Positions 3,870 to 32,061 of a stretch of DNA of 64,000 nucleotides are shown here, piece by piece. The DNA is from Macrostomum hystrix. Lineage: Eukaryota > Animalia > Platyhelminthes. Both the position numbers and the translations under genes were made by a program. The stretch spans positions 19,158,001-19,222,000 of the forward strand of contig CATNEN010000001.1 of assembly GCA_950097015.1 (NCBI GenBank), read 5' to 3'. The notes beneath the pieces are model-generated. The model saw nothing but the letters and a program-made list of their open reading frames with translations. It made no database searches and was not told where the DNA came from. Every line of letters starts with the position of its first letter. The first letter of the stretch is position 1.

Positions 3870-4512
3870 CTTTTTTGACGATTTTTGAGCAGTTTTTTGC
3901 ACTTTTGAGCAGGAAGAAATATCGACCAGAGAGCCCTGCGCACTGGGACGCCACCGCACTCACCGCACTCAGTCTCAGTGCTGCTTGGGGGCCAGTAGAC
4001 AGTCTAGGGGTTTGGGCTGTGTACATTCACGGCTTGAAATACAATGTACAGTCTGGGGCTTCGGCGCCCGGGGAAGGGAGGGGGTGCCTGTAATAAAATT
4101 TGGCCCGCAGCACCTAACGGCCGTGGACTAGCCGGCCTCAGCTCACGGTAAAAATTAGACGGCTAGCCCAGGTCACCTCACCGTGCCATGAGTCCGGCTA
4201 GACGAGTGCAGCTCATGAGCTCCCTGTGGGAACGTGAAGCGTGGGAACCCCATGATGAAGCGTGGTTGGCTGGGAGGGGTTGTTTACGCGAACTTGGGAA
4301 CGAACTAGACGATGGTGCCATACATCCCTATTTGAGCGGGGGACAAAGGGGAACGAGCTGTTTTTCCTCTTCCCACCAAAACTCGAATAGTAAAGAGCTC
4401 GTCGAGTCAAAACTTTAAATCTAATTCTATATCCTATACTAGCTAGAATTGTTAAATAGAAACCTTTTTTATTAGCTCAAATAAGAACTGACAGGTAAGC
4501 CAAGTTTAGGTG

Positions 4513-4681
4513 CCCATGTCGGTTTAATATTTTCCTATTTGTAATAATGTATTGTAAGAGTTTGTGGCATGTCAAAATCAATCCATATTTGTTATTTGAC
4601 CCATGTCAGTTTAATATTTTCGTATTTGTAATAATGTATTGTAAGAGTTTGTGGCATGTCAAAATCAATCCATATTTGTTA
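4513..4681. repeat. Two-copy 87-bp tandem duplication
   Basis: CCCATGTC(G/A)GTTTAATATTTTC...CAATCCATATTTGTTA at 4513 and 4600. Confidence 0.85.
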
Positions 4682-6836
4682 CTGCTGTATAATAATCTAC
4701 ATAGTTGGAAATTGCTGGTATTATAAATATTACTATCAATATTTATAGTAGTAATAGCTCATTAATGCTGCCTGCTAAACAAGCTTTTCATGCAGATCTA
4801 AACAGTGGCATACATAGCCTAGAAATCCATTCCAGGGGTCATTACTGTCTCGGGTGTCACGGCAAGCTCATGCTGATAATTTTCGCTAATTTTTGGTGCT
4901 CAGAATTCTGTTGAGTAATTCTAATGGGGCTCCAACCCCTCAGCCACATAGATCGTCACAGCGTCACCTATCCTATATGCAGAGGATAGGCCACCCTCTC
5001 CCATTCAAATGCACGCTCTCCTATTTCCCCTGTGTTAGGCAGATTTCTGGTAACCCATACTACTAGTGTTCGGCTACTAGTAGCTAGTATGACCCCCTCG
5101 CCTACGCCATTCAGATCAAGGTGTCAAATCTTAGATAGTCCAACTCTTAATCAGTGCACCCACACCTGCAGCCCGGAGAAATATGTAACATGCCCTGTGG
5201 CCTGTGACTATGACCTGTTAAGAGTGCCTTCAAGGAAGTGAATATTTCAGTCAAACCAATACATAAAAGTTGCGACACAGACTACTAGATGAGGAGTAGT
5301 ATCAACTGTTAGCCGTTCTTACTCTGCATCTGGCGCAGGAGAAAAGGGGAATGACGGAGAGATCGGGAGAGAGAGCAGATGAAAAAAGCACGGTGGAAAG
5401 CGGCAGAATTTGAATGTAATTGAAAGTTAGAAACAGGAACAGCCTCTATTTGTCAAAGTCAGTGTGTTAAATATAAGGAAAATGCCTGACCATAGCGGGC
5501 ATGTCTCCTCGAGGCTGATGTAGAGAGGAGAATCTGAGAATCACATGGAATCGAGTCCTCGTTTAATTATTGGTATTAGCATGTAGCATTAATAGAATGG
5601 GACCATATAGGGCCAAAACACCTGTTTATAAAAAATGAGGGCCATTGCATTTGAATTCCCATTGAACTGTAACTTTCACAAAAGCAATCAATATTTTTAT
5701 AGATATTAACTCACACGCTCGTCCAAAGAGTCGAGCTGCAGGCTGATAGTAGCTAGCTCTGAGAGCAAAAGTATTGCAGTAACTTGAGGCTTGCCTAGAA
5801 CCAGACAATGGCAGTTTGACAGCATAGACCTAGTCGTCCATTAGAGTCCATAATGTTGACAAGCGAACAGTCAGGCAGCAAGCAAGGCAGGCTGGAAATG
5901 TTTGAGGAAAATGTATTAGTATCAATATTTAGTGCAAAAACTGAAAACCATGATTAAACTGTGATTACCTCTTTAAAAGTTGAAAAAACTCAAAGCTTGT
6001 GAAATGTGTGCAGCATGTGTTTTGACTAGGGCCTGTTAAGAGTACCTTCAAGGGAATGAATATATCAGTCCAACTGTTAGCTATAGAATACTTAAATAGC
6101 TGTTCCAAGACCAAAAAATTTACCATGCCCATGCTAAATAATTCCTGAAGAAAAAGTTTCAAAGTAGAACTAATTTTCAAGTTAAGAATTCGAAATTGTA
6201 TTTCATGAATTTTTTATGCTTTTTCCTATTAATAGCAATGGTGACATGTTACAGTTTTGGATTTTCTAACTTGACCATTTTGTGGCCCTATAATATGGTA
6301 TTACTTGACATGCCTATAGACTCCAAAAATATATAGTTTGCCAATGAAGTGTAGGTAAATAGTTCATGTGAGTATGTGACAGACATTTGATTTACATATT
6401 GCTAAAAACTTAATTTTAGATGGGACCTACTAGCGGCAATGAATTTCTTCGAAAGAAGGGCTGTGCTAGTAAGTGTTTTATATACAGTAAGATTTAAAGG
6501 AATTGGGCATTTCTGCACCTACTAACTTGGTTTTTGTTCAGAATTGTACAGCTGACTGGAAAAAGGAAAAGGGCAGCTTTCTTAGTTTCTAAAAAATGGG
6601 TGACTGCCTTAAAAACTTGGTAAATATGCTTTCATGCATAATGCTGGTTTGGGTGTTAATTTTTCATTTTATATTTAAACAGTTAATTCAGTAATGGTGT
6701 TGTTCTCTCCCCTGAGGTCAAGGGGAGATTACCTTAAGCATGGCCTCACTTTTAATTCTTGCAGTTCTGGACAAAAGCCTAGTTTAGTGGAAATCTCGAT
6801 TAAATATTTTTAATATCATATACTTCTTCATTTCAG

Positions 6837-7972
6837 CTTGGACTTCAGCATTGCTAGAGAAGTATAGGGGTCTAAGTATAGCAAAAAAAGAACGACTAAG
6901 AAAAGCTGCTAAAAATCGACCTCGCCCAATTAAAAGAATCATTCAGGACTTGGACAAACATAAAGAAACTTACATTGTTATTAGAATTACTGAACATGAC
7001 AGAGCCATTTATCACTGTTCTAAAGATGTCACTGGCACTTTGAGTGGACAGGTCCAAGAAGCATGTAGTTCTATTGTTGATTTTATAAGAGCAGATAAGC
7101 AAGCGCAACACAGGCTTCAAAATTTGCAGCAGCTTCCTCAAACAGAAGGAAAGTTTGAAGAAATTATTAAAAATGGTGTTGTCTACATGCGCAAAGAGCT
7201 TAGTAAAATAGCTAAGGACGCTTATGAAAGGGCAGGCAACTCTGGTGCAATTCAATGGGCACTTATAGCTTCTGATTTAGCTACAGGTCAGAAGAAAGGG
7301 CCAGGACGTTTTATTCCCAACTTCTCTTCACCCCATAATCTTAACCAACAGCAATGTGTTGCACAATTTCAGGCAATTTCTGATCATGGTGAAGTAAAAT
7401 TTTGGTCTCATTCAGAATGGAATGAGAGAAATGTAGCACCTACAATTAGCACTGAAGGTACTCTGGCAAACCAAAATGAAGCATTGCTTGTTGGCATGCA
7501 AGGTACTAGTGCAAATGGTAATGATTCTGCAATAGTGGCTACACAGCAAAATGACTATGCTGCTGAGGCTGAGATAAGCCTCAATGAAGAATGTAGTCAA
7601 AGTGCAGAAGCATCACAAAGTAATGTCAATGATATTACCAGTCTCAACAATACTACTTCAAATATCAATAGTATTGAAAATTTATTCCAAAATCCAGACG
7701 CTTATTTAGAAGACATTCATTTGCAGCAACTTAGAAGTTCTCAAAATCAAGTAATACATAGTCACCTACGTCTTGCTCAGTTTTCGCAGAATTATTACCC
7801 AGGTATGTTATTGCCACATGAAATACAGATATCTGAGTCTCAAGTACCTCCTCAGGTACCTTTACAATTTTCATTACCAAGCCTGTCACATATGACACAG
7901 CAAAGTGCTGCTGAAGAACATGTTATCTCACAACAGCCAAACAGTAGGACAGTCCATCTTTTTCCTAGATAG
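6837..7972 (+). CDS. Unknown protein, probable terminal exon (basic/globular N-terminal half, Q/S/N-rich tail); KDZ cargo
   Basis: 373-codon stop-free frame in AT-rich DNA with no ATG at its start; preceded by a pyrimidine tract and TTTCAG acceptor at 6836. No family recognised. Confidence 0.6.
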
Positions 7973-9851: not shown

Positions 9852-10487
9852 GCATCAAAGAAAAAGTCGGCCGGCCGAAAGAAGGGTCGGGCCGACGCCC
9901 GGCCCTTGCGGGCCCCGCCACGCCCCCCGCCCCGCCCCCCGCCAACGCCTCCGCCATCGCCGCCACCGTCCAGGCCGGCCACCAGGGCTTCATATGCCCG
10001 GGTGGCCGGTGCTCCCCCCCTGATCCCGACCCAGCCTGCCCCTGCCCCAGTCCGCCCTCTTCTCCCCGCCCAACCCAACCTTCCAGCCCGCCCCATCCCT
10101 CCTCAACCCAACCCAGGCCCACAACCCACCCTCACCACCCCTGCCCCAGTCGGCCAACCGCCCCGTCCAGCCCGCCCCATCCCTCCTCAACCCAACCCAG
10201 GCCCACAACCCACCCTCACCACCCCTGCCCCAGTCGGCCAACCGCCCCGTCCAGCCCGCCCCATCCCTCCTCAACCCAACCCAGGCCCACAACCCACCCT
10301 TACCACCCCTGCCCCAGTCGGCCAACCCCCCCGTCCAGCCCGTCCCAACCCTCCCCAACCCAACCCAGGCCCAGCCCACCCTCCCCCCAATCCCCAGCAG
10401 CACAGCCGCCGCGGCCGCCCTCGTCATCGGGGAGGCCGCAAATGGCGGAACTGGAAGACGAATGTGACTTTCTGTGCCTTTAAATAG
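9852..10487 (+). CDS. Proline-rich protein exon with 28-aa (84-bp) repeats and basic termini; KDZ cargo
   Basis: TTTCAG acceptor, then ASKKKSAGRKKGR..., three full copies plus one partial PARPIPPQPNPGPQPTLTTPAPVGQPPR, then an RRGRPRHRGGRKWR tail; GC-rich island in AT-rich DNA. Confidence 0.5.
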   Translation, partial: ASKKKSAGRKKGRADARPLRAPPRPPPRPPPTPPPSPPPSRPATRASYARVAGAPPLIPTQPAPAPVRPLLPAQPNLPARPIPPQPNPGPQPTLTTPAPVGQPPRPARPIPPQPNPGPQPTLTTPAPVGQPPRPARPIPPQPNPGPQPTLTTPAPVGQPPRPARPNPPQPNPGPAHPPPNPQQHSRRGRPRHRGGRKWRNWKTNVTFCAFK

Positions 10488-11019: not shown

Positions 11020-11269
11020 AGTTCTGGGGAAGCAAAAATTTGGAAAAGTCGGTCCAGCCAAAAAATAAATACGCTATTTTCTGTCTATGTGTGCCTGATC
11101 CTGTCTATCTGCCCTGCCCCTGTGTAAATCGGGCAATTTTATTGGCCACAAGTCTTAGAAAAAAGGAAGATATCAGCTCCGCTTCCAGTCCAAATTTTAA
11201 TTTTAGAATGTGAATAGCAATTAAGCCGCCCCGAGTTATTCAGTTATTAAAAAATTCGTCACTAACTAA

Positions 11270-11502: not shown

Positions 11503-12504
11503 GGGGTAGCAGGGGCCATCAGATTAGCGAGTTTAAAAAATATGTTTATCCAGACGCAAATGTATTTTATCTTCAAGGGCAATAAATTTCGAAGGTCCCA
11601 GCGAAAAAAGTAAATTTCTATGTGCATCCGTTTAAAAAAGACATCGCTTAGAAAAGTGGCCTTTAATAAAATTTACAGTCTTTAAGTGTCGCGACCTTCT
11701 ACTCTAGTAGTCCTTGCAAATAACTACTAATTTTGACTACTAACTAAACTTTTCCGTTTAGCTTCCAGTGCAGATGCTGCTATATAGGGGTCCTTTGACT
11801 AAACCCTTCTCACACCGAGCCAAACTAACGGCCGTTTAATTTATCGATCCTTCCAAACCAAAAATATTTGTCAGTCATTTAACACCCACCCCATTCCCAA
11901 AACCCCATATTCGCGTGCGATTCGCTGTGATTCATTTAATGACACCCACCCCATTTCCCAAACCCCATAATCGCGTGTCCTCTCTGTCTTGAGGCTCCTG
12001 GCTTGCCTATTATGGTGTCCTGCATATCACACCATCTATTTAACACAAGACCAGAACAAAGACGCTCGTTCAGTCTCGACTCTCAAACTATTTTGTCATT
12101 AGATAGTGGACTTGTTGATTCTATTAAGAAAGAAAATTGTTTATCGAATCTAATAAACTTCAGTACATCTTTATTTTTATAACGTTGAGATTTGCAAAGA
12201 CTATCTGAGATTGAGAAAAACAGAATAACTCTGAGAAGAACATATTCTCATCGCATTCTCCCTAACTCTCCTCTTTATTAAAGACCAAGGAACAACTAAA
12301 CATCATTATTTCGTTTCTTTTATTAAAAATGGCTAATTTTGTTGACTATATTATTGACTATTTTCGTATTGTGGATTGTTCATATTGTTCATTGTTTAAT
12401 TCGGGCAGACAGGAGGGAGTGAGGGGCAGAGAGGAGAGAATTGAGATCATGGGATTAGAATTGAGATCATGGGATTGGAAAGGGGATCGTGGGATTGGAA
12501 AGTG

Positions 12505-12860
12505 GTCAGTGCCCTCCTTGCTAGAGAGGGGTCAGTGCCCTCCCTGCTAGAGGGGCCAGTTCCCTCCCTGCTAGAGTGATCAGTGCCCTCCCTGCTAGAG
12601 AGGGGTCAGTGCCCTCCCTGCTAGAGGGGCCAGTTCCCTCCCTGCTAGAGCGATCAGTGCCCTCCCTGCTAGAGCGGCCAGTTCCCTCCCTGTTAGAAGG
12701 GGTCAGTGCCCTCCCTGCTAGAGAGGGGTCAGTGCCCTCCCTGCTAGAGGGGCCAGTTCCCTCCCTGCTAGAGTGATCAGTGCCCTCCCTGCTAGAGGGG
12801 CCAGTGCCCTCCCTGCTAGAGGGGTCAGTGCCCCCATGTTATAGAGGGGACCAGTGCCCT
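12505..12860. repeat. ~21-25-bp minisatellite (CAGTGCCCTCCCTGCTAGAGGGG)
   Basis: About 15 tandem copies visible. Confidence 0.9.
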
Positions 12861-15208
12861 CAGGCAAGCAGGCAGGCAGGTAGGCAGACAGACAGGTAGA
12901 CAGACAGGACAGGATCAGATATCTACCCCATACTTTACTTGTATGGCTTACTAAATCTAGCCCAAATCTACCAAACCCAACCCCAACCCCACCCAATGCA
13001 GCCTCCTCTCCACTCCACCCTAGCTCTCCACCCTCTAAGCTTCTACTCTTCTACTTACACTTCCACTTCTTCCATGTGTTCATGAGCCATGACCCATGTG
13101 CTCAAATCTCTATCTGGCCTACAAGATAAAAATGGTTACCAACCCTGTCCTAATAGGTCAGTGTCCATAGATCTTATATTCCCTAGATAACCTACTCCCC
13201 ATTCAAGCAATGTGAAAAATGTGATCCCACTAAAAAACATTTAATAAACTTGACCATGTCCATGCTCACTCAGAGCTCAAGTTCAGTAGCTATGGGACAT
13301 AGGCAGTTATTTTTGTTTGGATGGCATTAAAAAGATGTAGCAGAAATTTATTTAGTTGCCAATGTTTCCTATCTGTGTGAGCTATGCTCAATAGCAAATA
13401 GATGGTGCCAGAGTATTAAACTCATGTAGCTGCTGTATGAGGAGCTGCGCCACCCAAGTGCCACAGGGCCACAGGGATCCTTTTCCCTTCCTCCAATTCC
13501 TATTCACTCATATTCCTATCCTTCTAGCCTACACAGAATTGTAGTCTATACTTTGACAGCACTTCATATGGCACCACAGAACATTAAATCAGCATTAGCA
13601 CTTGGCAATTTTTTTCAAGTCTCCTTTTGTTTCTTTGCATGGGGCTTAGGTATCTTTACTAGGCATACTCTTGCTATAAAATGCAACATGTAAAATGAAT
13701 ATTTACATAAAATACTGGCAATTTTCTCTCAAGCTACTGAGCTTAAACCAAATTAGAAATACATTGGGTCTAGGGGCACACAAAAGTCCCTAGAGTGCTA
13801 CATCTAGGTAATAAAGATCCATGGATTTGTCAATGATTAGAATAGTTCTAACGTGTTACATGACACTCATAAAACAAAGTCATACACAGTCATAGACAGT
13901 TAGGCCTACAGATGACAGATGTTAGACTTTGGTTCCAATTTTCTTATTTCTTCCCCTCATTTTATTAGATCTTTCTTTTAAAAGCACCATTCTTTTAAAT
14001 CTGTGACCTATGAAGTGGGTGCAAATTGGCAAGTATACCATACTGACCATACCATTTTTGGAATTGGATATACAATAGTCAATTAGTCTACTTTCGATTA
14101 CATATTCCACTAATTATCAATTCAATCATAGAATTAAGCCCTGCGGAATTTTTTAGGGGCAACACTAGTCCTTGATCCTAGGCTCCCAGCTCATAGATCC
14201 CATATCCCAGTAGTTGCTTGGAAATCTTAATAAGAATTTATATTCCTGGGTCCCAATTTCATTTAGAATAATTCATTGTTTCCATACAATTATGACAAGT
14301 TGCCAGCCAATAAGCTAGGCCTATGCATATAGACTAATAGACCCAATATACAGGTTTTTATTCTAATATTAAGACTTGTTAAGATAAGCATAAACTCTGT
14401 AGCCTATGTAAAAAAGGCTTGGATAGCTCACTATTTATAATACACTGAAACTTTATACTCTTAGAGGTCTACATTTTAATACATAAATGGAATGTGGGTG
14501 CATTCATTTAGTGATGATCATAGCAGGTCACATATTAGCTATGAGCCGAGCTGACAAGTTAGGACAGTGGCACTGGGTTGAGAGCAGTAGATTCATATTG
14601 TTTGAGTTAAACACTTTGAATGTGCAAGTCAAACATAAAACAAACAACAGACTCATACTACCTCCCCAAGCCTGTGATTAGCAGTAACACTTGTCCAGCT
14701 CTGCACATTACTTCGTATTGTATTCTGCTAAATTTCAATATTCTCCGCTTTCACATTATGCCTTGCTTTTATACTGTGAAACAAACTATTTATAACTTGA
14801 CGTACCCTTGTTCTCAAAGAAAATGACCGCGAAACGTTAATTTAAATGGTCCCTCATAACATACAGTGCAGAAACCATCTTTCCTAGAAAGCAAGTCGTT
14901 TCATAACGTAACTGTTGTTGCTCGGTCGTATAAAATCTCATTCGAATTATGACTTTCCAATGCTCATTTAAATGGGCCAACTTTTCTACAGAGCATGCTT
15001 TAGGACACATTATTGTTATTGCTTACTTATAAAAAACTTTCGCTCGGGGAAACTGTTAACTTTCATTGCCTCCCAATCATCATTCTAATTTTCGAAATTA
15101 TTCCTTTAATCCTACTTCTAAGTTGGAATTCTATTTTCCTAATTGAAATTTTCTTCTAATTTTAAATTTCATTTAAAGCATTTAATGCATTGTTGCAGAA
15201 TGGATGCT

Positions 15209-15258: not shown

Positions 15259-15259
<1 letters not shown>

Positions 15260-17986: not shown

Positions 17987-20418
17987 CAAACGGCAATAGG
18001 TGCCCACAAGCTCGAGCCCCAGTTAAAGTTTATAACTCTGGCTACAATAGTAATAATTACGTAGTCTGTGTGCTGCGAAACAACAACAACAACAACAACA
18101 ATATACGCCAGGTCTCTCCATGGAAACTGGAGAAACTGGGGAAACTGGGAAACTGGCTGCGAAACGCATGCATTTAAGGCCAAGCGTGGCACCAATTGTT
18201 GGTTTCTTGAATTTTCCTAAACGGCAATAGGTGCCCACAAGCTCCAGTTCAAGTTTATAAATCGGGCTACAATAGTAATTAAGTATAGTCTTTGTAGTGC
18301 GAAAATCATGTAGTTGAAGCCAAGCGTGGCACCAATTGTTGGTTTCTTGAATTTTCCTAAACGGCAATAGGTGCCCACAAGCTCCAGTTCAAGTTTATAA
18401 ATCGGGCTACAATAGTAATTAAGTATAGTCTTTGTAGTGCGAAAATCATGTAGTTGAGGCCAAGCGTGGCACCAATTGTTGGTTTCTTGAATTTTCCTAA
18501 ACGGCAATAGGTGCCCACAAGCTCCAGTTCAAGTTTATAAATCTGGCTACAATAGTAATTAAGTATAGTCTTTGTAGTGCGAAAATCATGTAGTTGAGGC
18601 CAAGCGTGGCACTGCAATTGTTGGTTTCTTGAATTTTCCTAAACGGCAATAGGTGCCCACAAGCTCCAGTTCAAGTTTATAAATCGGGTTACAATAGTAA
18701 TTAAGTATAGTCTTTGTAGTGCGAAAATAATGTAGTTGAGGCCAAGCGTGGCACTGCAATTGTTGGTTTCTTGAATTTTCCTAAACGGCAATAGGTGCCC
18801 ACAAGCTCCAGTTCAAGTTTATAAATCGGGCTACAATAGTAATTAAGTATAGTCTTTGTAGTGCGAAAATCATGTAGTTGAGGCCAAGCGTGGCACCAAT
18901 TACTGGTTTCTTGAATTTTCCTAAACGGCAATAGGTGCCCACAAGCTCCAGTTCAAGTTTATAAATCGGGCTACAATAGTAATTAAGTATAGTCTTTGTA
19001 GTGCGAAAATCATGTAGTTGAGGCCAAGCGTGGCACCAATTACTGGTTTCTTGAATTTTACTAAACGGCAATAGGTGCCCACAAGCTCCAGTTCAAGTTT
19101 ATAAATCGGGCTACAATAGTAATTAAGTATAGTCTTTGTAGTGCGAAAATCATGTAGTTGAGGCCAAGCGTGGCACCAATTACTGGTTTCTTGAATTTTC
19201 CTAAACGGCAATAGGTGCCCACAAGCTCCAGTTCAAGTTTATAAATCTGGCTACAATAGTAATTCAGTATAGTCTTTGTAGTGCGAAAATCATGTAGTTG
19301 AGGCCAAGCGTGGCACTGCAATTGTTGGTTTCTTGAATTTTCCTAAACGGCAATAGGTGCCCACAAGCTCCAGTTCAAGTTTATAAATCGGGCTACAATA
19401 GTAATTAAGTATAGTCTTTGTAGTGCGAAAATCATGTAGTTGAGGCCAAGCGTGGCACTGCAATTGTTGGTTTCTTGAATTTTCCTAAACGGCAATAGGT
19501 GCCCACAAGCTCCAGTTCAAGTTTATAAATCTGGCTACAATAGTAATTAAGTATAGTCTTTGTAGTGCGAAAATCATGTAGTTGAGGTCAAGCGTGGCAC
19601 CAATTGTTGGTTTCTTGAATTTTCCTAAACGGCAATAGGTGCCCACAAGCTCCAGTTCAAGTTTATAAATCGGGCTACAATAGTAATTAAGTATAGTCTT
19701 TGTAGTGCGAAAATCATGTAGTTGAGGCCAAGCGTGGCACTGCAATTGTTGGTTTCTTGAATTTTCCTAAACGGCAATAGGTGCCCACAAGCTCCAGTTC
19801 AAGTTTATAAATCTGGCTACAATAGTAATTAAGTATAGTCTTTGTAGTGCGAAAATCATGTAGTTGAGGTCAAGCGTGGCACCAATTGTTGGTTTCTTGA
19901 ATTTTCCTAAACGGCAATAGGTGCCCACAAGCTCCAGTTCAAGTTTATAAATCGGGCTACAATAGTAATTAAGTATAGTCTTTGTAGTGCGAAAATCATG
20001 TAGTTGAGGTCAAGCGTGGCACCAATTGTTGGTTTCTTGAATTTTCCTAAACGGCAATAGGTGCCCACAAGCTCCAGTTCAAGTTTATAAATCGGGCTAC
20101 AATAGTAATTAAGTATAGTCTTTGTAGTGCGAAAATCATGTAGTTGAGGCCAAGCGTGGCACTGCAATTGTTGGTTTCTTGAATTTTCCTAAACGGCAAT
20201 AGGTGCCCACAAGCTCCAGTTCAAGTTTATAAATCGGGTTACAATAGTAATTAAGTATAGTCTTTGTAGTGCGAAAATCATGTAGTTGAGGCCAAGCGTG
20301 GCACTGCAATTGTTGGTTTCTTGAATTTTCCTAAACGGCAATAGGTGCCCACAAGCTCCAGTTCAAGTTTATAAATCTGGCTGCAATAGTAATAATTAAG
20401 TATAGTCTGTGTGATGCG
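17987..20418. repeat. 140/142-bp satellite, ~17 units
   Basis: AAACGGCAATAGGTGCCCACAAGCTC recurs at 18219, 18359, 18499, 18641, 18783, 18923 ... 20333, plus a divergent first unit at 17987. Confidence 0.96.
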
Positions 20419-20520
20419 ACGCCGCAGGCTTACTTATTGACCCCGGATTTCGACAGGGATCGCTTCTACGTCTATCCCAGAATACGGGGAATCAAATCCC
20501 ATCGAAATTCATCAAAGTTA

Positions 20521-21561: not shown

Positions 21562-21979
21562 GTTGCCACACCTGGGCTAAATTACTCTAGCTAAGTGTAA
21601 TGACTATAGGTAAGTCAAATACATGCACAAGTAGGATTGCAGGCAAGCAGACACGAAAGGTGTACACACGCATATGAGCATTCACACTTGTATGCATATG
21701 AACGCATATGAAGCAATTATGAAGTCAGATTGGCCGAGTTCGCATAACAACAAAACGCCTTGGACGACTGGAGGGAATTGAAAAATGACATTAGACAAGG
21801 CTAAAGGCGTAGAAGTGCGTAGCCACGTACCTTTAATTGTGCAAATAGTTATAAAAGCTAAAATATCGTTAGCAAGATGCTTCTTCAAAGATTGGTCACA
21901 ACGGTTGAAAGACCAGAAACACCGCCTAAAAAATTGTATGGATCGTCATTTCCATTGTGTTGAATGCTCGCGCACGTCA

Positions 21980-22513
21980 TCATGTTGACATCGCGCACGT
22001 CATCCTGTTGACATCAGAATTGTAGCTTAAAGCTGCAGCGGAGCGTTGATTACAACTGTAGTCTTGGGCCCCAGGCACCTGTGGATTTAAATCAACTGAA
22101 TGAGCACTCGTAGGTTGACCAGCTGCTGGAAGAGCCGGCGATATTTCGTTGGCAGGAGCTTTACCACCAACAGCGATGTTGCGTAGCTCGTCAATGAAAC
22201 TTAATGCAGCAAGGTTAGCAGCTTTGAAGTCCTCAGTCGTGATGATGATTCTATCGCCTCCTCTTCTCCCGCGATTGTGAATGAGCATGTGCATATCGAA
22301 TCCCGAAGTGATAGTAGAGCAATATGGACAGAGATAAAAAATAGGAGACAACTCCAGCTTATGTTGTAGGCGACAGTAGCGAAGGTTGGCGTCGATTCGC
22401 CTTTCAGATAGGTCCGGATGAGCTCCGCGGCAATGCTGTTTAAAACCTGATGCCCTGCCACTCTAGTGGCACTGAAGACACGTAATCGCGGCGTGAATGT
22501 TGGGAGGTGTCAT
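21980..22513 (-). pseudogene. Disrupted paralogue of the C2H2-like zinc-finger gene
   Basis: ATG at 22513: MTPPNIHAAITCLQCH*SGRASGFKQHCRGAHPDLSERRIDA...LCPYC...HMLIH. The TAG at 22463-22465 aligns with Trp of the intact paralogue. A 23-bp duplication near 21970-22014 shifts the C-terminal frame. Confidence 0.75.
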
Positions 22514-22785
22514 CAACTTTCAATGGAAGTGATGCTGGCCTGAAATTTATTCGAGATTGAAGTTTGAAACGTTGACAATTAAAGCTAGACCCTAAATGAA
22601 GGCGTGAACGCTAATATATAAACGCTAATAAGGACATTGATCTGCCATGCATATAATTGTATAAAGCAGGCAGTCTATTCTCAAATGTACATCTATCTCC
22701 ATTTGTCCTAGTTGTTCCCTGCACAGCCAACTAATGAGCAGAAAGAAAGCGCATCTAAAAAACAAGCAATTAAAAAACGAAAACG

Positions 22786-23232
22786 CGAAACACTGTTTAG
22801 GAGCCCCTCCATTTATTTGACAGACAATGAAACTGTGAGCTATATAATAATAATAAAACGGAATTGAACGGAAAAGCTGATAAATGAACGAATTTAATAG
22901 TGTCATTAGTCCCACGAATAAAAACAGCTAACGTAAGTACACTGCCAGTCCGCTGGATAGTGCAAACATGCACGGTAAGATTGGCAGCGCACGGTAATTA
23001 GCAGATTTTATTCGCGCTCAACGAGTCCGCCGCGAGAAGGCTGACACATGGGCTCATAGCGCTTTAAAACGTAGCGCTTCACAGCACATTGAATTGCATG
23101 TGCAAAGTGATCTGTAAATATTTTGCTAGTTGAATGAATTGTATCCAAAATTTGGCCTCACTGGTATTAATTTTAGCGTTCTTAAACTTAACGCTTCACA
23201 GCACCCACACAAAAGTAGGTGCAGAGTGACTT
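22786..23232. repeat. Non-coding module, copy 1 (upstream of the ZF pseudogene)
   Basis: Near-identical to 24202-24766, from GAAACACTGTTTAGGAGCCCC to CACAAAAGTAGGTGCAGAGTGACTT. Confidence 0.9.
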
Positions 23233-23310
23233 GCTGTAATTGGCTCTGTCGATATACCAATTTTTCCATGGGATAGGGGTGGTATGGTATTTTGTTCCAA
23301 CAGGAAGACC

Positions 23311-24045
23311 TCAGGTAGCAATTTTTATGGGAGACGAGGTGGGAATTTTCGGGTTATATCGGGTCAAGTTGGTAGCAGATTTACGCAAGACAATAGGCGG
23401 TAAGGGTTTGACGCAATAAGGGACTCTTGGAGGAATCACAAATGGTAATGGGTTTCGACAGATTTTAGCTGGAACTCGATGAGTTTCTGGCGTAGGTTTA
23501 GGACTTTTAGGAGCACCTTCAGAAGAGTTGCAGCGCTCTTCCTGCTGCTGCTGTTCTGCGGGAATTTTTGTTGACGCACTCGTCTCTTGGCTAGTTGCTG
23601 ATGTAATTTGTACCTCGCCGATATCCTTGTACATCTCAACCAGAATAGATAGCTGACTAGCAGCGAACTCAAGTTCCATGTATTGGAGTGGATGCTTTTC
23701 TTCTGTAGCAAGTTTGTGAAGTTCTGCTACACGCCGCGAACCTGATTCGCGTAATTTCAGGACAGCCGCACGACCCGCGAGGGCTTTGCGGCGGTATGTA
23801 GAGCCATATTCAGGTACGTGGCATCTCTTAAAATGCGCTCTTTGGTGAGAAATCAGAGCCCCGCATATCGGACAGAGACACACCGGCTTCGCTTTTGAAG
23901 TCGCCTTCGCGAAGTCAATCATCGCCTGAATCCTGTCATCCTCCAGAGCGGGGTGCCTTTTCTCGCAATGCCTCCAAAGCATGTAGGATCGACCAGTCCA
24001 ATTGGAACAGACAAGACAGGACACTTTCGCGTGTTTGTTGGGCAT
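23311..24045 (-). CDS. 244-aa protein with two C2H2-like zinc fingers and a disordered Pro/Ser/Thr tail; KDZ cargo
   Basis: CLVC-x11-HCEKRH and CPIC-x9-HFKRCH; ATG-to-stop intact. Confidence 0.75.
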   Translation of the reverse strand: MPNKHAKVSCLVCSNWTGRSYMLWRHCEKRHPALEDDRIQAMIDFAKATSKAKPVCLCPICGALISHQRAHFKRCHVPEYGSTYRRKALAGRAAVLKLRESGSRRVAELHKLATEEKHPLQYMELEFAASQLSILVEMYKDIGEVQITSATSQETSASTKIPAEQQQQEERCNSSEGAPKSPKPTPETHRVPAKICRNPLPFVIPPRVPYCVKPLPPIVLRKSATNLTRYNPKIPTSSPIKIAT

Positions 24046-24201
24046 GATGAGTTTTGTGTGTTTACAGTTTGAAGTTTAAAGTTTTTTTTAAGTTGCCTGC
24101 GTTTCGCTGAAATCGGTGACGTATATAGGCACAAGTATGTAAATGCTAAAAAAGGAAAACATGTTTATCAAGCACGGCAAGCAATGAAAAAATAAGAACG
24201 A

Positions 24202-24766
24202 GAAACACTGTTTAGGAGCCCCTCCATTTATTTGACAGACAATGAAACTGTGAGCTATATAATAATAATAAAACGGAATTGAACGGAAAAGCTGATAAAT
24301 GAACGAATTTAATAGTGTCATTAGTCCCACGAATAAAAACAGCTAACGTAAGTACACTGCCAGTCCGCTGGATAGTGCAAACATGCACGGTAAGATTGGC
24401 AGAGCACGGTAATTAGCAGATTTTATTCGCGCTCAACGAGTCCGCCGCGAGAAGGCTGACACATGGGCTCATAGCGCTTTAAAATGTAGCGCTTCACAGC
24501 ACATTGAATTGCATGTGCAAAGTGACCTGTAAATATTTTGCTAGTTGAAAGAAATATGTGTCCAAACTTTGGGCTTACTGGTATTAATTTTAGCGTTCTT
24601 AAACTTAACGCTTCACAGCACATTGTATTGCATGTGCAAAGTGACCTGCAAAAAATTTGCTAGTTGAAAGAAATGTGTCCAAATTTTGGGCTTAATGGTA
24701 TTAATTTTAGCGATCTTAAACTTAACGCTTCACAGCACCCACACAAAAGTAGGTGCAGAGTGACTT
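24202..24766. repeat. Non-coding module, copy 2 (between the KDZ stop and the ZF start), with an extra internal ~117-bp unit
   Basis: Matches 22786-23232; CGCTTCACAGCAC occurs three times here versus twice in copy 1. Confidence 0.9.
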
Positions 24767-24836
24767 TACAAGGCAGCGCTTGACTTCAATTAAAAACACA
24801 AGTAACGGTGGAATCATCAGTACACTGGTTGGATAC

Positions 24837-27284
24837 TTAATCGGAGTCGCTATCAGAAGACTCCGAATCTTCTGAAGCAACCGCTTCATTAGCGCTCTGA
24901 CTCAGTGTGCTGAGGGAGAATTTATTCGCAAGAAGATATTTTACAGCATCAGTCACGCTTTTACTTGCAACATCTTCAAGCAGTCTTCTAAACAATTCCC
25001 GAAATTGAGCGGCTAAGCCCGGCTGATTCGCTAAGTCATCACAGAGGCTCTGCAAATTAACCTGAAGGTCAACCCACTCATCTGAAATAATATGCGCTTC
25101 TTCTTTTAGGCGTTTATATTTGTTACTGACGTCTATAGCCCGCTGACGAAATCGGATGGAAAGGTCGGTTCCAGACAAATGTTCATATTTCGCACTACGC
25201 GGTTTTTTATATTCATCGAAAGAAGCTCTGTCTTCAATTGGAAGACGAGCGTAGAGTTTTTTCATGTCGGATGCATAACTTTTAACCTTTCGCAAGCACA
25301 TTCTGGTTTGACTTTGGCCAACTGACTTACCAACCTGTTTACTCCAATGATCTCTGTGCACTGCAAGAGCGCGTAGCTCACATAGGATATCATCTTCCGA
25401 GTTGTGTACAGCTACTCGGAGGGAATCTTCATACCATTGGGAGCCTAAATCCAAAATTTCATCCTCAGAGATGACCAGACTGTCATTTCGGACCCCCGAG
25501 TGCTGCAAAATCGCAGACTGGCTTTGTAGCTCTTTTAGTTCACTTAGAATGCTTTTTCCCGCACCTACCATAAGCTTAATACGTTGTGTAAACCACCCAG
25601 AAGCGCTAAGAAGCTGTTGTGCATTAAAGAAGTATAGAATATGCGCCATGTATTGTGCTCGTCGGTCTTTCCGCATGTACTTTAAAAACTTACCGAACGG
25701 CCTGAGTTGAGACCAGGCTCGCTCAGTATTCTCTCCATCGCATAGACCTGCGCCTGGAGTAACGCGAACAGAAAACTTTTTTTGACAACTGGGCAGGTGA
25801 CCAAGAGCATGAAAAGCGTTTATTGCACAGCTACTCGCTTGAATGTTGGCACCAGACTTCGCAATAGCGGATTTAACCCGGCTGGATACGCGACAGCCTG
25901 TGAATTGGGATAAAGAGTAAGTCATGTTGTCATATAACTGTACACAAGCAACAGTATTTCATAGATTGTATGCATTTTATAAAATAATAATAAACTTACC
26001 CACGTCATATACGACAAGTAATTCCTTAGACACTTTGACGTTTCGCAGAAAGTGTTCAAGGCACTGTTCCAGGTAGCAAAACTTTTCTCCACCAGTTGTG
26101 ATATTTGAGCCACACAAAAGGCGATTGTGACGACAGAATAATCCAAAGAAACCCGTGACATCATGTCTCTGCTCACGGCTTAATGGTTCATGAGCACCGG
26201 CCTTCCAATTAGGACAATTCTGTTCCTCTGCTCGATTTTTTGGCACATCCGCTTTAATATCTACATAGACAAGCGGCGTAGGTAATGGACGACCATCTGA
26301 TGGTATTTCCAGTTGTGTACGCCCCTTGGCTTTAAAGCGCTGCCAACCAAATAGAGCATCTGCACAGACAACAGTTTTGCGCACAGCGTGATTATCTGGA
26401 CAGAGAAGACAATTATTTGGCCATTTTGCTGAGGCCATTTGCAGGTGGCGAAACCGCAGCAAAACATCATGTCGTTGAATGCGTTGATAAGTGCTTTTTA
26501 CAAGAGCCAAATTATATGTACCTTGTCCCAGAGTTGGCCCAATGAGCAGTGTACTGACCGCTCTGTGAACAGGCAACTGCCCAGTCATACACAAACTGTC
26601 TAGCAGGGACAAAAAGGTAAAAGAAAAGAATGCATACCCATCTGAATCAGGCTTTGACCCTTCGCAACAAGGGAAGAACCCTTGAGAAAGGAGTGCACCA
26701 ATAAGATCACAGGAGTCGCAGGTAATAAAAATGACCTTTACGCTTCCAGCCAGATCTATAAGGTCAACTTTTGTAGCCGCACAGACATTCAGATTCAATT
26801 TACTAGAAGCGCAGCAAAACATTTCAAAAGCATCGTGAGTAGCATCCAGTTCCTGAAACATTAGACTCTCCTTATTCCATATGAGAAACTTGTGGGCTGA
26901 AAACTTTTTATGCGTCTCATTCTTACAGCTGGCACATAAGCTAAGTCGACAAGTAACACATCGATATACACCTTCGTGCTCATAGCAAGAGGAACACAGA
27001 TTTAAGAGAAAATGCTTCTCGTAACTACCTCTGTATTTCTCAGCAAAGCTGTCAAAATCTACCCATTCAACATCTTCTACTGTAGGAGCAAAAGACTCAG
27101 GCATACCGACATCATTCTCGGTGCTAGCTTCCACTGGAACAGGAGTAGTTTCAGACACAGGACGCCGAGATGTTGAGCCTCGATTTCGGCCGCTAATGAT
27201 TGTCTTAATCTTTCTGGGTCGCCCACGACAGCCAGTTTGCAGTGTAGCTTTGACAACACGCTTCAGTTCGATGCCGCGATACAT
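24837..27284 (-). CDS. CxC (CxC2/CxC3-like) cysteine cluster + KDZ transposase, two exons (27284-26000, 25897-24837), 781 aa
   Basis: A 102-bp GTAAGT...TTCACAG intron joins YDVG|CR in frame. KDZ motifs: VCADALFGWQR, GFFGLFCRH, GEKFCY, YDVGC, FHALGHLPSCQ, GAGLCDGENTERAWSQL. N-terminal CxxC...YRCVTC...LCASC...H...H..W cluster and LLSQGFFP. Confidence 0.92.
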
Positions 27285-27890
27285 TGTCTGGAAATGAGAA
27301 AGTAATTTATAATCATTGGTTTACAGTATTTAATATTGTAGACAGACAACTGTTTTCTATTTAATACTATAAAGTTTTATATATTCTATAATGAAATCAT
27401 AGCACTTATATTCAACATATATTCCCACAAGTATTGTGGCCATGTAACTACAGTCTGTGGAGATTGCTGACCTGCACTTGGGCGTCATTTCTATACACTT
27501 GCTTGAATATAAAGAATTGAACATTTACTTAAAAATTTGCACACAAATCCCTTTTTCTCACTCTCACAAATTAACACATTACTGCCACCCATGGACTCCA
27601 TGGAATGTGACAAAGATTGGCAGACTTGGGGTGGCAGTTTGCTCAGCTTTGCCAGGGCCAGACTGTCATGCTGCAGTGTCCAGCTGCAGCTATTCTGCCT
27701 AGATGATCAGCCTGTCTGATACTGATACCAGCATGGACTTCTCTAATCCTCCAATGGATTGCCACTAATCTCAGTCGAATACCTTCTCAAGTGATTGATT
27801 TCAAGATTTCAATTTCACTATTTACGATATAAATATTGATCTTAAGTTCAAGGTCCACTGGAAAGAAGCCTTTATGTGCAAAGAGTATGC

Positions 27891-28324
27891 GGCAATGTTC
27901 TACTTCCGTTCGTTATATTATTTTTTCATTTGCAAATGACAGATAACGACAAAAACAAGTTTAACGGAAACAATAAGTCTGTAGTTTGATCAGACAGTTC
28001 TGAAAAGTCTTGGTCAGTCTTTCTTCTTTCAAACCGGGTAAGTGCCTAATCCAGTAGAGGAGGGCACCGAAGCTATTCTTGGGGTATAGACAGCGCCATA
28101 AGAATTCTTTGAGGTGGCTTTCGAATAGAGCAGCATTCGTGCCATGCATTTGACGCAGCTTGGCCTTCACAAAATCTTCAGCTGCAGAATTTCTGTGCCT
28201 AAGCTTCCTGTTCCCCCATATTTGCCAGATTTTGCCATAGACATAGATCCAAGTGTCAAGTCACGGCAAAGCCATGTCAATTCAAACGAAAAAATAATAT
28301 AACGAACGGAAGTAAAACATTGCC
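27891..28324 (-). mobile_element. Non-autonomous Merlin (IS1595/ISXO2-like) element, 434 bp
   Basis: ~50-bp TIRs GGCAATGTT(C/T)TACTTCCGTTCGTTATATTATTTTTTC; 8-bp TSD GAGTATGC at 27883-27890 and 28325-28332; internal KAKLRQMHGTNAALFESHLKEFLWR matches the ISXO2 transposase C-terminal motif. Confidence 0.9.
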
Positions 28325-30298
28325 GAGTATGCATTAGTTTTTTTGAGATCTTGCCCTATTAACTATTTACTTTATTTACTATTTACCAAAGCCTACTTGA
28401 CTCAATGTTAAAGTTACTTATATTGGTGGTGCATGTCACTTATTACATTGTTTATAATTTCTTTCTGGCACACAGCCACCTTTTTGACTCTGGAAGTAGG
28501 CTAGGAGGCTAGGTCTAAAGACCAAATGAAATTAGTGACTGTTGCTTCATAAAAAGTTGCAGAGCTTGGTACACTGTTAAGCAAGAAATGCAAAGAAACT
28601 AGCAGCAGAACTTAATAAATAAAAGTGAATATTATAGTCGGACAACTGTTTCTAATTTAATACACACTGGCACAACCTCTAACAAAATTTTGGATTAACC
28701 CATCTTCAATGTTAACTAAATATGAGTAAATGCTTATAGGCACTAGCTATAGTACTGGTTTACTGCCGAGTTAACTAGTTTCTAACCTGCCAAAGATAGT
28801 CAGATAATATTTCCTATTCAATACTAGCTATCTAGAGTATTATATTACATCATATTAACCATGTAATTTTGCCATATAGCGACATATGTTATTTTCCAAC
28901 TGACATTGTTTAGACATTTATCGAGTTTTTAATTACCTTGTGCAAATGACTCTGATTTGTCCAAAACTAAGTGAAGAGTGAAGTAAACAATACAAATATT
29001 TTTGTTTTTAACCTTAATTACGATTTACGAAGAACGAAATTAGCTACCAAAGTGGCAATAATCTAGAAAAAGTAACAGTAATGTGGAATGATTGCAATTG
29101 GTACAATCTTGTACTTTTTTGTCCCGATTTACCTGTCTTTCACTTTCAGTTGAATTCAAAGAGAAAATTAAATTACTAAATTAATTAAAATTCAGTTCAA
29201 AATTAAAATTTGAAAAAGCTAAAAACAACATGGCGGACAACTCCGACGAACATGCATCTGAAATTATTTAAACCGCGCCAAAAAAATCTGCAGAGCCTTC
29301 TTTATGTATATGTCTAAGAACATAATTATTTGTTTTTTTAAAGCAGTATTAAGTAGCCTATACCTTTATTACGATTTTGTTTTTTTAAACTCAAACGCTA
29401 CGAGTACGTTACGGTTTACATACGTAAGTTGCGGGTAATATCGAGCCGATCTTCAAGAAAGGAAAATAATGTGTTTCGTAGCTAATTATTTGGAATACCT
29501 TGGTTTTTCGAGAATTATTAAATTAAGACCTAATATACCAGAAAGTCTTACGGTTTCCCTACTTTGTAGCAGAACACGAAAGCTCAGACACTTTTATTAA
29601 AAATATATAATATCTGTAGATGAATTAACTAAATCGATGTTTCAGTAGGTTGAACTCGTGCGATTATACTGCTTTTGCAACAGAATGCAATGACTTTGCA
29701 TCAATTAGATTTATAAATTGGTCGATTATTTATCATGTTGATTTCTGTCGAAAAGGTTAAATGTTCCGGAAACTTTATGTAACTCTAAACAAAGTAAAAC
29801 ATTTAGATACTGGTGTGAGGCATTGCACTTCGTACCCTACAAAATTTAAACGCTGTTTTGCCGTTTTTATGCAGTATGTGTTTAAAAAAATCTTTTAGCG
29901 AACTATTTTCGCTTCAACCTTTCTTTTAAGTTACTTTTATGCTTTAAAAATAATGATTTTTGCCTTGCTGGTCTTTATTTAAAACTTTATGGATTACATG
30001 CAATGACAAAAATAAGTAGAATGTTTGGTGCAACGATAAATCGATGACTTTCGTTACGGGTGCTAATAATTTTGACTTTTGCTGAGTTTGTAATAAATTT
30101 GTAATATTGACGTTCACCCTTTTGGTTTTTGAAGCTTTGCAGATAAAATTTGGGGACCTGCTGGACCCGTCGTTAGATAATGGAGCGATTCGCTAGCTCG
30201 CGATATATTTGCTTGCGTTGCTAATATTGCGTTGCGAATTTGATCGCTACGATGGCCATTGCTTAAAATAAGAAAGCACAAGCTGCAGCCTGCAGCCA

Positions 30299-31578
30299 AA
30301 AAAGTATTCGAACGAAAGAATATATACTAATAAATAGTAATTCTTCGTTGTATTTGGCCAATGTCATGTGGTGAAACTGGTAGCACGTCAGCCTGATAAC
30401 TGCGGGTCGTTGGTTCGACTCATTTTTTATTTAAATTAATGATTATATGTTTTGCAGAACAACAAAAACATCATATAAGCCTACTCATTTCTTAATCTGG
30501 CTGAGTAAGAAAAAAAGCGGTTTTACGCTGATTTACATAAATATCAGCACTATACAGTACACTCGAAGCACCAAAGGAATCACATACAGTAGGATAGCCT
30601 ATATGTTTTGAAAAACTCTGAAAAAGTATTCGAACGAAAGAATATACTTATAAATAGTAATTCTTCGTTGTAAACTGGCAATGTCAAGTGGTTTAACTGG
30701 TAGCACGTCAGCCTGACAACTGCGGGTCGTTGGTTCGACTCATTTTTTATTTAAATTAATGATTATATGTTTTGCAGAACAACAAGAACATCATATAAGC
30801 CTACTCATTTCTTAATCTGGCTGAGTAAGAAAAAAAGCGGTTTTACGCTGATTTACATAAATATCAGCACTATACAGTACACTCGAAGCACCAAAGGAAT
30901 CACATACAGTAGGATAGCCTATATGTTTTGAAAAACTCTGAAAAAGTATTCGAACGAAAGAATATACTTATAAATAGTAATTCTTCGTTGTAAACTGGCA
31001 ATGTCAAGTGGTTTAACTGGTAGCACGTCAGCCTGACAACTGCGGGTCGTTGGTTCGACTCATTTTTTATTTAAATTAATGATTATATGTTTTGCAGAAC
31101 AACAAGAACATCATATAAGCCTACTCATTTCTTAATCCGGCTGAGTAAGAAAAAAAGCGGTTTTACGCTGATTTACATCAATATCAGCACTATACAGTAC
31201 ACTCGAAGCACCAAAGGAATCACATACAGTAGAATAGCCTATATGTTTTGAAAAACTCTGAAAAAGTATTCGAACGAAAGAATATACTAATAAATAGTAA
31301 TTCTTCGTTGTATATGGGCAATGTCAAGTGGTGAAACTGGTAGCACGTCAGCCTGATAACTGCGGGTCGTTGGTTCGACTCATTTTTTATTTAAATTAAT
31401 GATTATATGTTTTGCAGAACAACAAGAACATCATATAAGCCTACTCATTTCTTAATCCGGCTGAGTAAGAAAAAAAGCGGTTTTACGCTGATTTACATCA
31501 ATATCAGCACTATACAGTACATTCGAAGCACCAAAGGAATCACATACAGTAGGATAGCCTATATGTTTTGAAAAACTC
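30299..31578 (+). repeat. Four 320-bp tandem units, each with a truncated tRNA-like Pol III cassette
   Basis: AAAGTATTCGAACGAAAG at ~30301, 30623, 30943, 31263; each unit has an A box TGGT(GA/TT)AACTGG, a B box GGTTCGACTC and a T6 run. Confidence 0.85.
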
Positions 31579-31614
31579 TTAAATTAAGAAAACTCTTAAA
31601 GAATTTATTTTTCC

Positions 31615-31855
31615 AAACATATCGGCAGCATCCGAACCCCACAGAATTGCCGCACAGAACTGCTTTATTCCACGCCAGCCAGAATTATTATTACCCGACG
31701 AAATGTCGGTACTCATCTGCAGCTGAGTAGACTGTGTGCACATCAGGGCAAAGCAGCTTGCCAAGGGCTGCACGAATAGTTCTAGACTAGGTCGGGAGTC
31801 GAACCCAGGACCATCTGATCCAGAGTCCGACACCTTACTGACTGAGCTATCCGCC
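31615..31855 (-). mobile_element. tRNA-derived SINE (family A) within the KDZ right arm
   Basis: Same sequence as 1660-1900. Confidence 0.7.
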
Positions 31856-32061
31856 CTCATGGGCAACCTCTCCCCCTCCTCCTCCCCCCCGTCACCTTCC
31901 TATCCCATATCCGAGGCCCACACCAGGAGCGCACCCTGGGCCCATGGGCTGGGCTCATGAGCTGCGATCGGCTAGCCCAGCTCACCTCACCATGAGGGCA
32001 CCCTGGCTAGGCGCATAATAAACGCATGAGCTGGGGCCGGCTAGCCCGCGGCCATAGACTG

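Follow-up and report, generated by a model that had tools for sequence, protein, structure and literature searches.

Near the left end of a 64,000-nucleotide stretch of the genome of the flatworm Macrostomum hystrix (contig CATNEN010000001.1, positions 19,158,001 to 19,222,000; hereafter, the window), a Helitron-like repeat is interrupted by almost 28 kb of DNA that encodes a transposase of the Kyakuja-Dileera-Zisupton (KDZ) type. The question raised by this locus is what all of the other DNA between the two halves of the repeat represents. A sequence-only reading had taken the insertion for a vehicle that carries cargo. The analysis described here indicates instead that positions 4111-32061 of the window are very probably one copy of a young, multi-gene KDZ DNA transposon family of M. 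hystrix, whose interior recurs from copy to copy.

To date, KDZ elements have been defined and characterised mostly in fungi; the largest fungal ones proven to be mobile are ~11 kb, and complete structures are recent (PMC11343200, PMC12730594). Literature searches found no paper on flatworm KDZ elements, and the M. hystrix genome paper left the repeats uncharacterised (PMC10468722).

Ends of the element and its target site

The left end of the element, at 4111, reads CACCTAACGGCCGTGGACTAGCCGGCC... and the right end, at 32061, reads ...GGCCGGCTAGCCCGCGGCCATAGACTG (Table 1). The ends align with each other as imperfect terminal inverted repeats (TIRs) of ~37 bp, with the CA...TG termini that the sequence-only reading had described. 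Weaker similarity between the ends, together with repeated GGCTAGCC / CAGCTCATGAGC motifs, reaches ~115 bp inward; at the left end, subterminal motifs of the GGCTAGCC type run on to ~4225.

The host repeat is a unit of ~2 kb, often present in tandem. Its open reading frame (ORF) at 3208-3744 on the minus strand encodes a fragment of the Pif1 2B helicase domain (Pfam, E = 1.4e-19), and this remnant, which fits a Helitron derivative, makes the Helitron label reasonable. In the M. hystrix assembly (220,453,370 bases in 42 contigs), which was used for all own-genome searches, uninterrupted copies of the repeat join the position equivalent to 4110 directly to that equivalent to 32069: the homologue of 3933-4110 is followed immediately by that of 32069-32472, as in the empty copy L063, where 1337-1514 and 1515-1923 are directly joined. 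The predicted empty-site string, AATTTGGCCCGCAGAGTGG, occurs 346 times in the genome versus 0 times for the reversed control, and the empty site is often found at ~2.2-kb spacing. Thus, the element splits the Helitron as cleanly as had been proposed.

A family of recently moved copies

Searches of the genome with the first and last 300 bp of the element yielded ~21 left ends and at least 25 right ends, indicating a family of ~20 copies of 18-46 kb. The ends co-occur at other loci as expected of a mobile unit: 12 same-strand pairs, 18.6-46.6 kb apart, are bordered by perfect target site duplications (TSDs) within otherwise unrelated flanks (Table 1). Six of the 12 TSDs are 7 bp long and six are 8 bp, and no consensus emerges from the duplicated sequences. 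Because the identical copies on contigs C26, C25 and C7 made both lengths, the family itself generates 7- or 8-bp TSDs. The 7-bp duplication claimed earlier is therefore correct for the window copy, where CCCGCAG stands on both sides, but it is not a fixed property of the family.

The family has moved very recently. Blocks of 6.2 kb differ by ~0.2% between copies on four contigs (from bit scores), copies that are ~99.8-100% identical occupy different loci with different TSDs, and at least nine copies have an open transposase exon 1 of ~100% identity. With an intact and expressed transposase (see below), these near-identical copies uphold the earlier description of a giant, recently mobile invertebrate KDZ element. 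The young, near-identical copies contain a nested miniature inverted-repeat transposable element (MITE), which the older ones lack and which thus marks the latest burst.

The copies are unevenly distributed. Of the 21 left ends, 17 are on contig C1. The longest contig measures 35.3 Mb (PMC10468722), so that C1 accounts for no more than 16% of the assembly. This clustering would reflect either tracts rich in transposable elements on C1 or local hopping of the elements. On C1 the left ends fall mainly into two intervals, 2.8-3.7 Mb and 10-23 Mb. The contig also contains ~17 copies of a different SET-domain repeat, with frames of 189-190 codons.

A second right end in the window

Self-comparison of the window reveals a second, older right end of the same family, as the sequence-only reading had noticed from its ~2 kb. 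Positions 1-2094 are ~96% identical to 29320-32061, the right ~2.7 kb of the main element, and have the same terminal base. The last letters of this older copy, up to 2094, are ...CCATAGACTG. Next comes AATTTGGCCCGCAG, which is the Helitron site described above, shifted by 7 bp; the host sequence after 2094 reads AATTTGGCCCGCAGAGTGG, so that the older copy entered 7 bp further left than the main element.

A candidate partner for this right end, the left end at C1:19088105, was rejected since the TSDs do not match. The bracket from that left end to window position 2094 spans 72 kb and contains family fragments in order, and its flanks share no TSD. The bracket (C1:19088105-19160094) represents either two truncated copies or one rearranged, heavily invaded copy.

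The transposase

The transposase is encoded by two coding exons on the minus strand (27284 to 26000 and 25897 to 24837), which specify 428 and 353 residues, respectively, for a total of 781. The two halves of the KDZ domain are borne by the ORFs at 25977-27284 and 24837-25925, both on the minus strand. When the exons were searched separately rather than as the joined protein, each exceeded the cut-off of 26.6 bits for the Pfam KDZ model (PF18758): exon 1 with 38.6 bits (profile positions 3-125) and exon 2 with 59.9 bits (positions 125-214). As a class, KDZ transposases are enzymes with an RNase H fold. All neighbours of the transposase in the Atlas are KDZ clusters.

Over its full length the protein is colinear with proteins of 777-830 residues from Macrostomum lignano, its closest relatives, with invariant Cys/His and Asp columns. 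In the M. lignano protein PAA68011 (808 residues), residues 16-445 match exon 1 and residues 447-767 match exon 2, with the sequence ...YDVGCRVS... running across the junction. A B-box-like C/H cluster (C97...H131) is invariant at all of its positions in nine relatives, as are the exon 1 residues D309, D375, E400, and D427, candidate catalytic acids of an RNase H-like fold; cysteines C158, C189, C192, C292, and C295 are also invariant in the alignment of relatives, and a DGE..ER motif in exon 2 is conserved with relative P0002. At the position of the CxC cluster (residues 149-231), the match to CxC1 is sub-threshold (E = 0.033; 14.7 bits versus a cut-off of 26.9). The M. lignano relatives give weak CxC1/CxC2 matches here, and a nemertean relative, P0010, gives a significant CxC2 match of 36.2 bits. 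Thus, of the intact, spliced, 781-residue CxC-KDZ transposase that had been predicted, the length, the two exons, the KDZ domain and the splice joint seen in RNA are borne out; the CxC assignment is sub-threshold in the window protein itself.

Pfam matches to SWIM, CxC4, SAP, and Ulp1 were absent from exon 1 (E up to 5), from exon 2 (E up to 0.01), and from the full-length relatives (E up to 5). This lineage of transposases is sparse in the databases: of 1.84 billion cluster representatives, 14 match exon 1 (E up to 0.001), including proteins of M. lignano and of the nemertean Tubulanus.

Expression and trans-splicing

Contigs of four public RNA runs were compared with positions 21700-27600, 5.9 kb of the element. 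Contigs from two runs of a single study lack precisely the 102 nt between 25896 and 25999; the skipped stretch is bounded by CT..AC on the plus strand, which is GT..AG on the gene strand. In addition, contigs that end at 27288, 24107, and 22540 continue into part of the reverse complement of the 35-nt spliced leader known from M. lignano (PMC8629364). The 23 nt at 27288 read TGCGAAGACTCAATTTATTGCAT and correspond to spliced-leader positions 12-34; shorter leader stretches are found at 22540 (21 nt) and at 24107 (16 nt). Together, intron removal and the spliced leader indicate that the contigs represent cDNA. The transposase transcript is thus spliced, and is trans-spliced 4 nt ahead of the ATG, and the two zinc-finger genes that lie downstream on the same strand are likewise trans-spliced.

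The distance from the end of one gene to the next acceptor is ~630-770 bp, which is below the 1-kb operon criterion used for Macrostomum (PMC8629364). The transposase and the zinc-finger genes are thus a fair candidate for an operon-like unit, and no more than a candidate because RNA coverage is zero at 24261-24457. Some contigs contain a non-canonical 842-nt skip (23240-24083), and in one contig the spliced leader and 9 unmatched nt are joined at 23973. Both features probably derive from variant copies, and not from splicing of the window copy.

Genes and repeats of the interior

The transposase occupies 8.8% of the element, in agreement with the earlier estimate of under 10%, and the question posed above therefore concerns mainly the rest. 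Three own-genome searches, covering most of the interior, revealed that the ~25 kb beyond the transposase is collinear in other copies, at 89-100% identity. This collinearity identifies the interior as content of the family rather than cargo captured by the window copy.

A Pfam scan of 205 interior ORF pieces (56 with 75 codons or more and 149 with 40-74) gave no real domain and no host-type gene. TET_JBP had no match among these pieces, all of at least 40 codons, and GTF2I had none at E up to 1. Matches to ZZ and APC_r were rejected as spurious, since they lie in tandem repeats; the ZZ match was traced by a scan for Cys patterns to the 57-bp repeat at 17132-17365.

One of the "unknown ORFs" of the sequence-only reading is in fact a conserved accessory gene. 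Its 394-codon frame is open in at least ten copies, down to 92% identity. Furthermore, a second KDZ family, whose transposase is 51-55% identical to that of the window, has a 30%-identical homologue of the first 180 residues at eight loci, at a distance of 10-20 kb from its own transposase. Recurrence beside a sister KDZ transposase argues that the 394-codon gene is ancestral to the lineage and was not captured. The product of this gene is probably a cofactor. Loci of the second family include C38:26299020, C39:1210313, C32:120318, C34:1199148, C29:1241502, and C7:1403177. At the C7 locus, a 407-codon zinc-finger/SET frame is present ~30 kb from the transposase.

The zinc-finger genes and satellites that had been reported are also present. 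Zinc-finger gene 2 encodes a classical C2H2 finger (C-x2-C-x12-H-x4-H) together with another, short cluster of Cys and His residues, and is open in seven to eight copies. Zinc-finger gene 1 is its paralogue (35-38%). It is broken by a stop codon in the window copy and open for 179 codons in other copies; at the stop position, three of the four RNA runs have TGG and one has TAG, like the window copy. No database homologue outside this genome was found for zinc-finger gene 2 or for the 394-codon frame, and the Atlas likewise gave nothing for the latter. Single-sequence AlphaFold models of the two accessory proteins have mean predicted local distance difference test (pLDDT) scores of 35 and 48, too poor for a fold search.

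Fuller copies carry a further gene. In the copies on C26, C25, and C7 and in three copies on C1, the repeat module at 24075-24649 is doubled, and the two modules flank a 1.15-kb segment that has no counterpart in the window copy. A genome-wide scan with the SET model (PF00856) gave matches of 58.9 bits, in open frames of 184 codons, exactly inside this segment in six of six copies, and no match in the window copy. The window copy is thus a deletion derivative: the SET segment is missing and zinc-finger gene 1 is interrupted by a nonsense codon, but the transposase is intact. Most simply, the SET segment would have been lost by recombination between the two ~0.57-kb direct repeats. The earlier statement that no companion genes are present is true of the window copy, which has no TET_JBP, SWIM, SAP, Ulp1, or SET match, but it does not extend to the fuller copies with their SET gene.

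What had been called RNA polymerase III cassettes are modules that derive from tRNA and contain A and B boxes; neither ARAGORN nor Rfam (at the gathering threshold and at E up to 1) recognises a tRNA or RNA family in them. Copies of the 100-bp tRNA-derived module, 96-100% identical, are found at no fewer than a dozen further loci, spread over seven contigs.

Table 1. Features of the KDZ element and its surroundings (window coordinates), followed by the 12 copies with paired ends
Feature	Position	Strand	Length	Remarks
Whole KDZ element	4111..32061	+	27,951 bp	
Left TSD	4104..4110			CCCGCAG
Right TSD	32062..32068			CCCGCAG
Left imperfect TIR	4111..4147	+		starts CA; end-to-end alignment
Right imperfect TIR	32025..32061	-		ends TG; end-to-end alignment
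Helitron-like host repeat	2095..4110	-		one ~2-kb unit; last ~210 bp are the insertion hot zone
Interrupted Helitron-like host repeat resumes	32069..32472	-		homology with empty copies
Right-hand part of another, older KDZ family copy	1..2094	+		
Transposase exon 1	26000..27288	-		B-box-like zinc cluster, CxC1/2-like cluster, first KDZ half; ATG 27284; spliced leader at 27288
Transposase intron	25898..25999	-	102 nt	GT..AG, phase 1; spliced out in RNA contigs
Transposase exon 2	24837..25897	-		second KDZ half, C-terminal helical/acidic tail, stop codon
Conserved accessory gene, main exon	6851..7969	+		394-codon open frame
Zinc-finger gene 2	23311..24107	-	244 aa	ATG 24045, stop 23311; spliced-leader acceptor 24107
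Zinc-finger gene 1	21983..22540	-		spliced-leader acceptor 22540; frame broken by TAG 22465-22463
Repeat module	24075..24649	.		single here, twice in 31-32-kb copies; related to 22763-23204
140-bp satellite	18158..20419			16 units
Smaller satellite arrays	4513-4681, 10082-10373, 12504-12861, 17132-17365, 20521-20730, 21100-21560			
Four 320-bp tandem units	30299..31583			each with a tRNA-like stretch
Nested MITE	27890..28325	.	~430 bp	~50-bp inverted ends, own 8-bp TSD
tRNA-derived module	31790..31860	-		A and B boxes
Copy C26			31,350 bp	TSD CCGCCAC, 7 bp
Copy C25			31,637 bp	TSD GCCTATAG, 8 bp
Copy C7			31,914 bp	TSD TAAAATTT, 8 bp
Window copy			27,951 bp	TSD CCCGCAG, 7 bp
Copy on C1	C1:3458170-3504738		46.6 kb	TSD CCGAGGC, 7 bp; within another copy
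Copy C5			25,534 bp	TSD AGCTCTTA, 8 bp
Copy on C1	C1:18662165		26,510 bp	TSD TCCCCTGC, 8 bp
Copy on C1	C1:12584658		18,580 bp	TSD GCTTGGG, 7 bp
Copy on C1	C1:17592735		25,681 bp	TSD TAACTTCG, 8 bp
Copy on C1	C1:18264905		31,622 bp	TSD CACCATG, 7 bp; within another copy
Copy on C1	C1:14073019		21,240 bp	TSD GCCTTCC, 7 bp
Copy on C1	C1:23187218		45.6 kb	TSD ATAGAGAG, 8 bp

Family content, nested repeats, or cargo

The interior might be explained without any additional transposon genes if a small KDZ core had been swollen by unrelated nested repeats in one master copy before amplification, the other ORFs being junk frames. The internal MITE, with its own TSD and its absence from older copies, is what such a history would leave behind, as are the several satellite arrays and the tRNA-derived modules, and the accessory ORFs have neither a Pfam domain nor a database homologue. 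However, a junk frame would not be expected to stay open down to 92% identity and to have a 30% homologue in another KDZ family, as the 394-codon frame does, and the zinc-finger genes are transcribed, bear the spliced leader, and are open in most copies. Swelling accounts for part of the bulk but not for the genes, and as an explanation of the whole it is possible but doubtful.

The idea of a true cargo vehicle, which ferries host genes in the manner of a Starship and whose content would be variable and host-derived, fares worse. It gains some appeal from the small share of the element taken by the transposase, from copy sizes that range from 18 to 46 kb, from a SET module that is in some copies and not in others, and from tRNA-like modules that are found elsewhere in the genome. 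However, the interiors are collinear, and the copies differ in size through deletions, nested insertions, tandem modules, and satellites of unequal length. The 205 ORF pieces contain no host-type Pfam domain, and the 394-codon gene recurs beside the sister KDZ transposase, with a zinc-finger/SET gene near one copy of that sister family (on C7). The cargo interpretation is thus not sustained and must be considered unlikely. Finally, the suggestion that the 28-32-kb blocks are segmental duplications or assembly redundancy, which several ~100% identical copies and the haplotig purging required for the published assembly (PMC10468722) might bring to mind, is refuted by the TSDs in Table 1 and retains practically no probability, since the flanks differ from copy to copy, every copy is bordered by a perfect 7-8-bp TSD of its own, similarity ends exactly at the same two termini, and there are hundreds of empty target sites.

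Several points weigh against the preferred reading, that of a multi-gene KDZ family. The CxC cluster of the transposase falls below the Pfam threshold, and no left-end partner was found for the second copy in the window, whose right end is at 2094. Both the collinearity and the gap at the SET gene rest on BLAST and hidden Markov model coordinates of the other copies. The RNA evidence is confined to 21700-27600. For none of the accessory proteins could a domain be recognised or a fold be predicted with confidence, so that their roles are guesses. Lastly, a search of the Helitron hot zone for excision footprints gave 0 matches at 22-30-nt spacing, which leaves the class of the enzyme as the sole ground for supposing that movement is by cut-and-paste rather than by copying.

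Given a multi-gene KDZ family, a working scheme can be proposed in which catalysis, end-binding sites and accessory functions are predictions. The element-encoded 781-residue transposase, with its B-box-like cluster, CxC1/2-like cluster, and KDZ RNase-H-type domain, presumably binds the ~37-bp ends and the adjoining GGCTAGCC motifs. The entire unit would thereby be mobilised, and a staggered cut of 7 or 8 bp at insertion would give rise to the TSDs. The remaining ~25 kb is standing family content: the 394-codon accessory gene, common to the sister KDZ family, and the co-oriented, trans-spliced genes downstream of the transposase, which encode zinc-finger proteins and, in full copies, a SET methyltransferase-like protein. 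Satellites, the MITE, and tRNA-like modules were carried along in the last burst.

Comparison with other large transposons

Starships, which are found in fungi, rely on a tyrosine recombinase, and the host cargo that they carry is variable and often adaptive. The flatworm family resembles them in its size of tens of kilobases and in its many non-transposase genes, but it differs in having a KDZ enzyme of the DDE type and a content that is collinear between copies. The differences seen between copies are insertions and deletions, tandem arrays, one gene module of the family, and nested repeats, rather than the variable host cargo of Starships.

Fish Zisupton elements carry SAP/Ulp1. Like these, the flatworm element is an animal KDZ-class DNA transposon with TIRs; unlike them, it has no detected SWIM, SAP, or Ulp1 domain and has 7-8-bp TSDs, and it is much larger. 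The fish element is an animal KDZ-class transposon with TIRs and an 8-bp TSD, according to the account of Bohne et al. (2012) as cited in PMC12730594, and Zisupton transposases contain SWIM and CxC4 domains (PMC11343200). TSDs of 8 bp are reported for both Zisupton and Dileera (PMC12730594).

Kyakuja elements of Agaricomycotina (Kyakuja-1_LB and Kyakuja-2_LB; Kojima 2025) have 7-bp TSDs, CA..TG ends, no TIRs, and TET/JBP genes (PMC12730594). The flatworm family shares with them a KDZ-type transposase, 5'-CA..TG-3' termini, a large size with extra genes and, in half of its pairs, the 7-bp TSD; the other half have 8 bp. In contrast to Kyakuja, it has imperfect TIRs of ~37 bp, TSDs of either length, no TET/JBP, an animal host, and a size of 26-32 kb. 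In full flatworm copies, a SET gene takes the place of the TET/JBP gene of the fungal elements, and there is a conserved second gene as well.

In Cryptococcus, the elements KDZ1-3 (Dileera clade) and KDZx1 (Zisupton type) are experimentally mobile; they encode CxC and KDZ domains, have TIRs, 8-bp TSDs, and functionally unassigned extra ORFs, and have been called "gigantic" (PMC11343200). These Cryptococcus elements are 6.4-10.9 kb with 236-bp TIRs, and the mobile KDZ1-3 are 9-11 kb (PMC11343200). The flatworm elements likewise combine a KDZ transposase, TIRs, and extra ORFs, but they are ~3 times larger, with short TIRs, genes trans-spliced to a spliced leader, and neither SWIM nor CxC4.

To this picture the window adds a family census, a mixed TSD length, a conserved second gene, the status of one copy as a deletion variant, and a quantified target bias. 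The window copy itself, SET-less and with one zinc-finger gene broken, is a natural deletion variant and no new kind of element. The family of 26-32-kb elements, with at least nine copies that have an intact first transposase exon, with expressed genes, and in the contiguous genome of an inbred laboratory flatworm, is well suited to studies of the movement of such large DNA transposons, of the function of the conserved second gene, and of the reason for the SET-type enzyme in some elements.

Target bias

Insertions of the family are not scattered evenly over the repeats that they enter. In the Helitron unit, eight independent insertions lie within a terminal zone of 210 bp (unit positions 1815-2024), and five of the eight are within 25 bp of each other. 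At least three further insertions entered other copies of the element, in their final 150 bp. The loci concerned are the window site (2095-4110 / 32069-32472) and L001, L003, L008, L022, L043, L044, and L048. Two more insertions strike another repeat a few bp apart. This regional bias is open to experimental test.

The Helitron zone contains three CAGTCT motifs that resemble the right terminus of the element (CAGTCTATGG on the other strand). Near insertion sites, CAGTCT is present at 1.85 per kb versus a background of 0.3-0.6 per kb, an excess that serves only as a lead, since the comparison is post hoc and the excess is owed mostly to non-independent sites. This post hoc observation suggests that the element may target end-like DNA. 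A tentative and rather improbable extension would make the element a self-contained "mini-genome", with its transposase, zinc-finger, and SET genes in an operon-like unit resolved by the spliced leader, its own chromatin writer, a lineage-conserved cofactor, and targets chosen through end-like DNA (right ends of sister copies and the CAGTCT-rich 3' zone of the Helitron). If true, this would be a homing mechanism so far undescribed for KDZ elements.

Other repeats in the window

Just past the right flank of the element, at 34645-37400, there is a 23-bp satellite of more than 120 units, with a strong excess of C and A on the plus strand. Farther to the right, four segments (38448-38655, 50212-50442, 56139-56313, and 63579-63659) form inverted or direct repeats of ~80-120 bp with 83-91% identity, suggesting that they are the ends of another repeat family.

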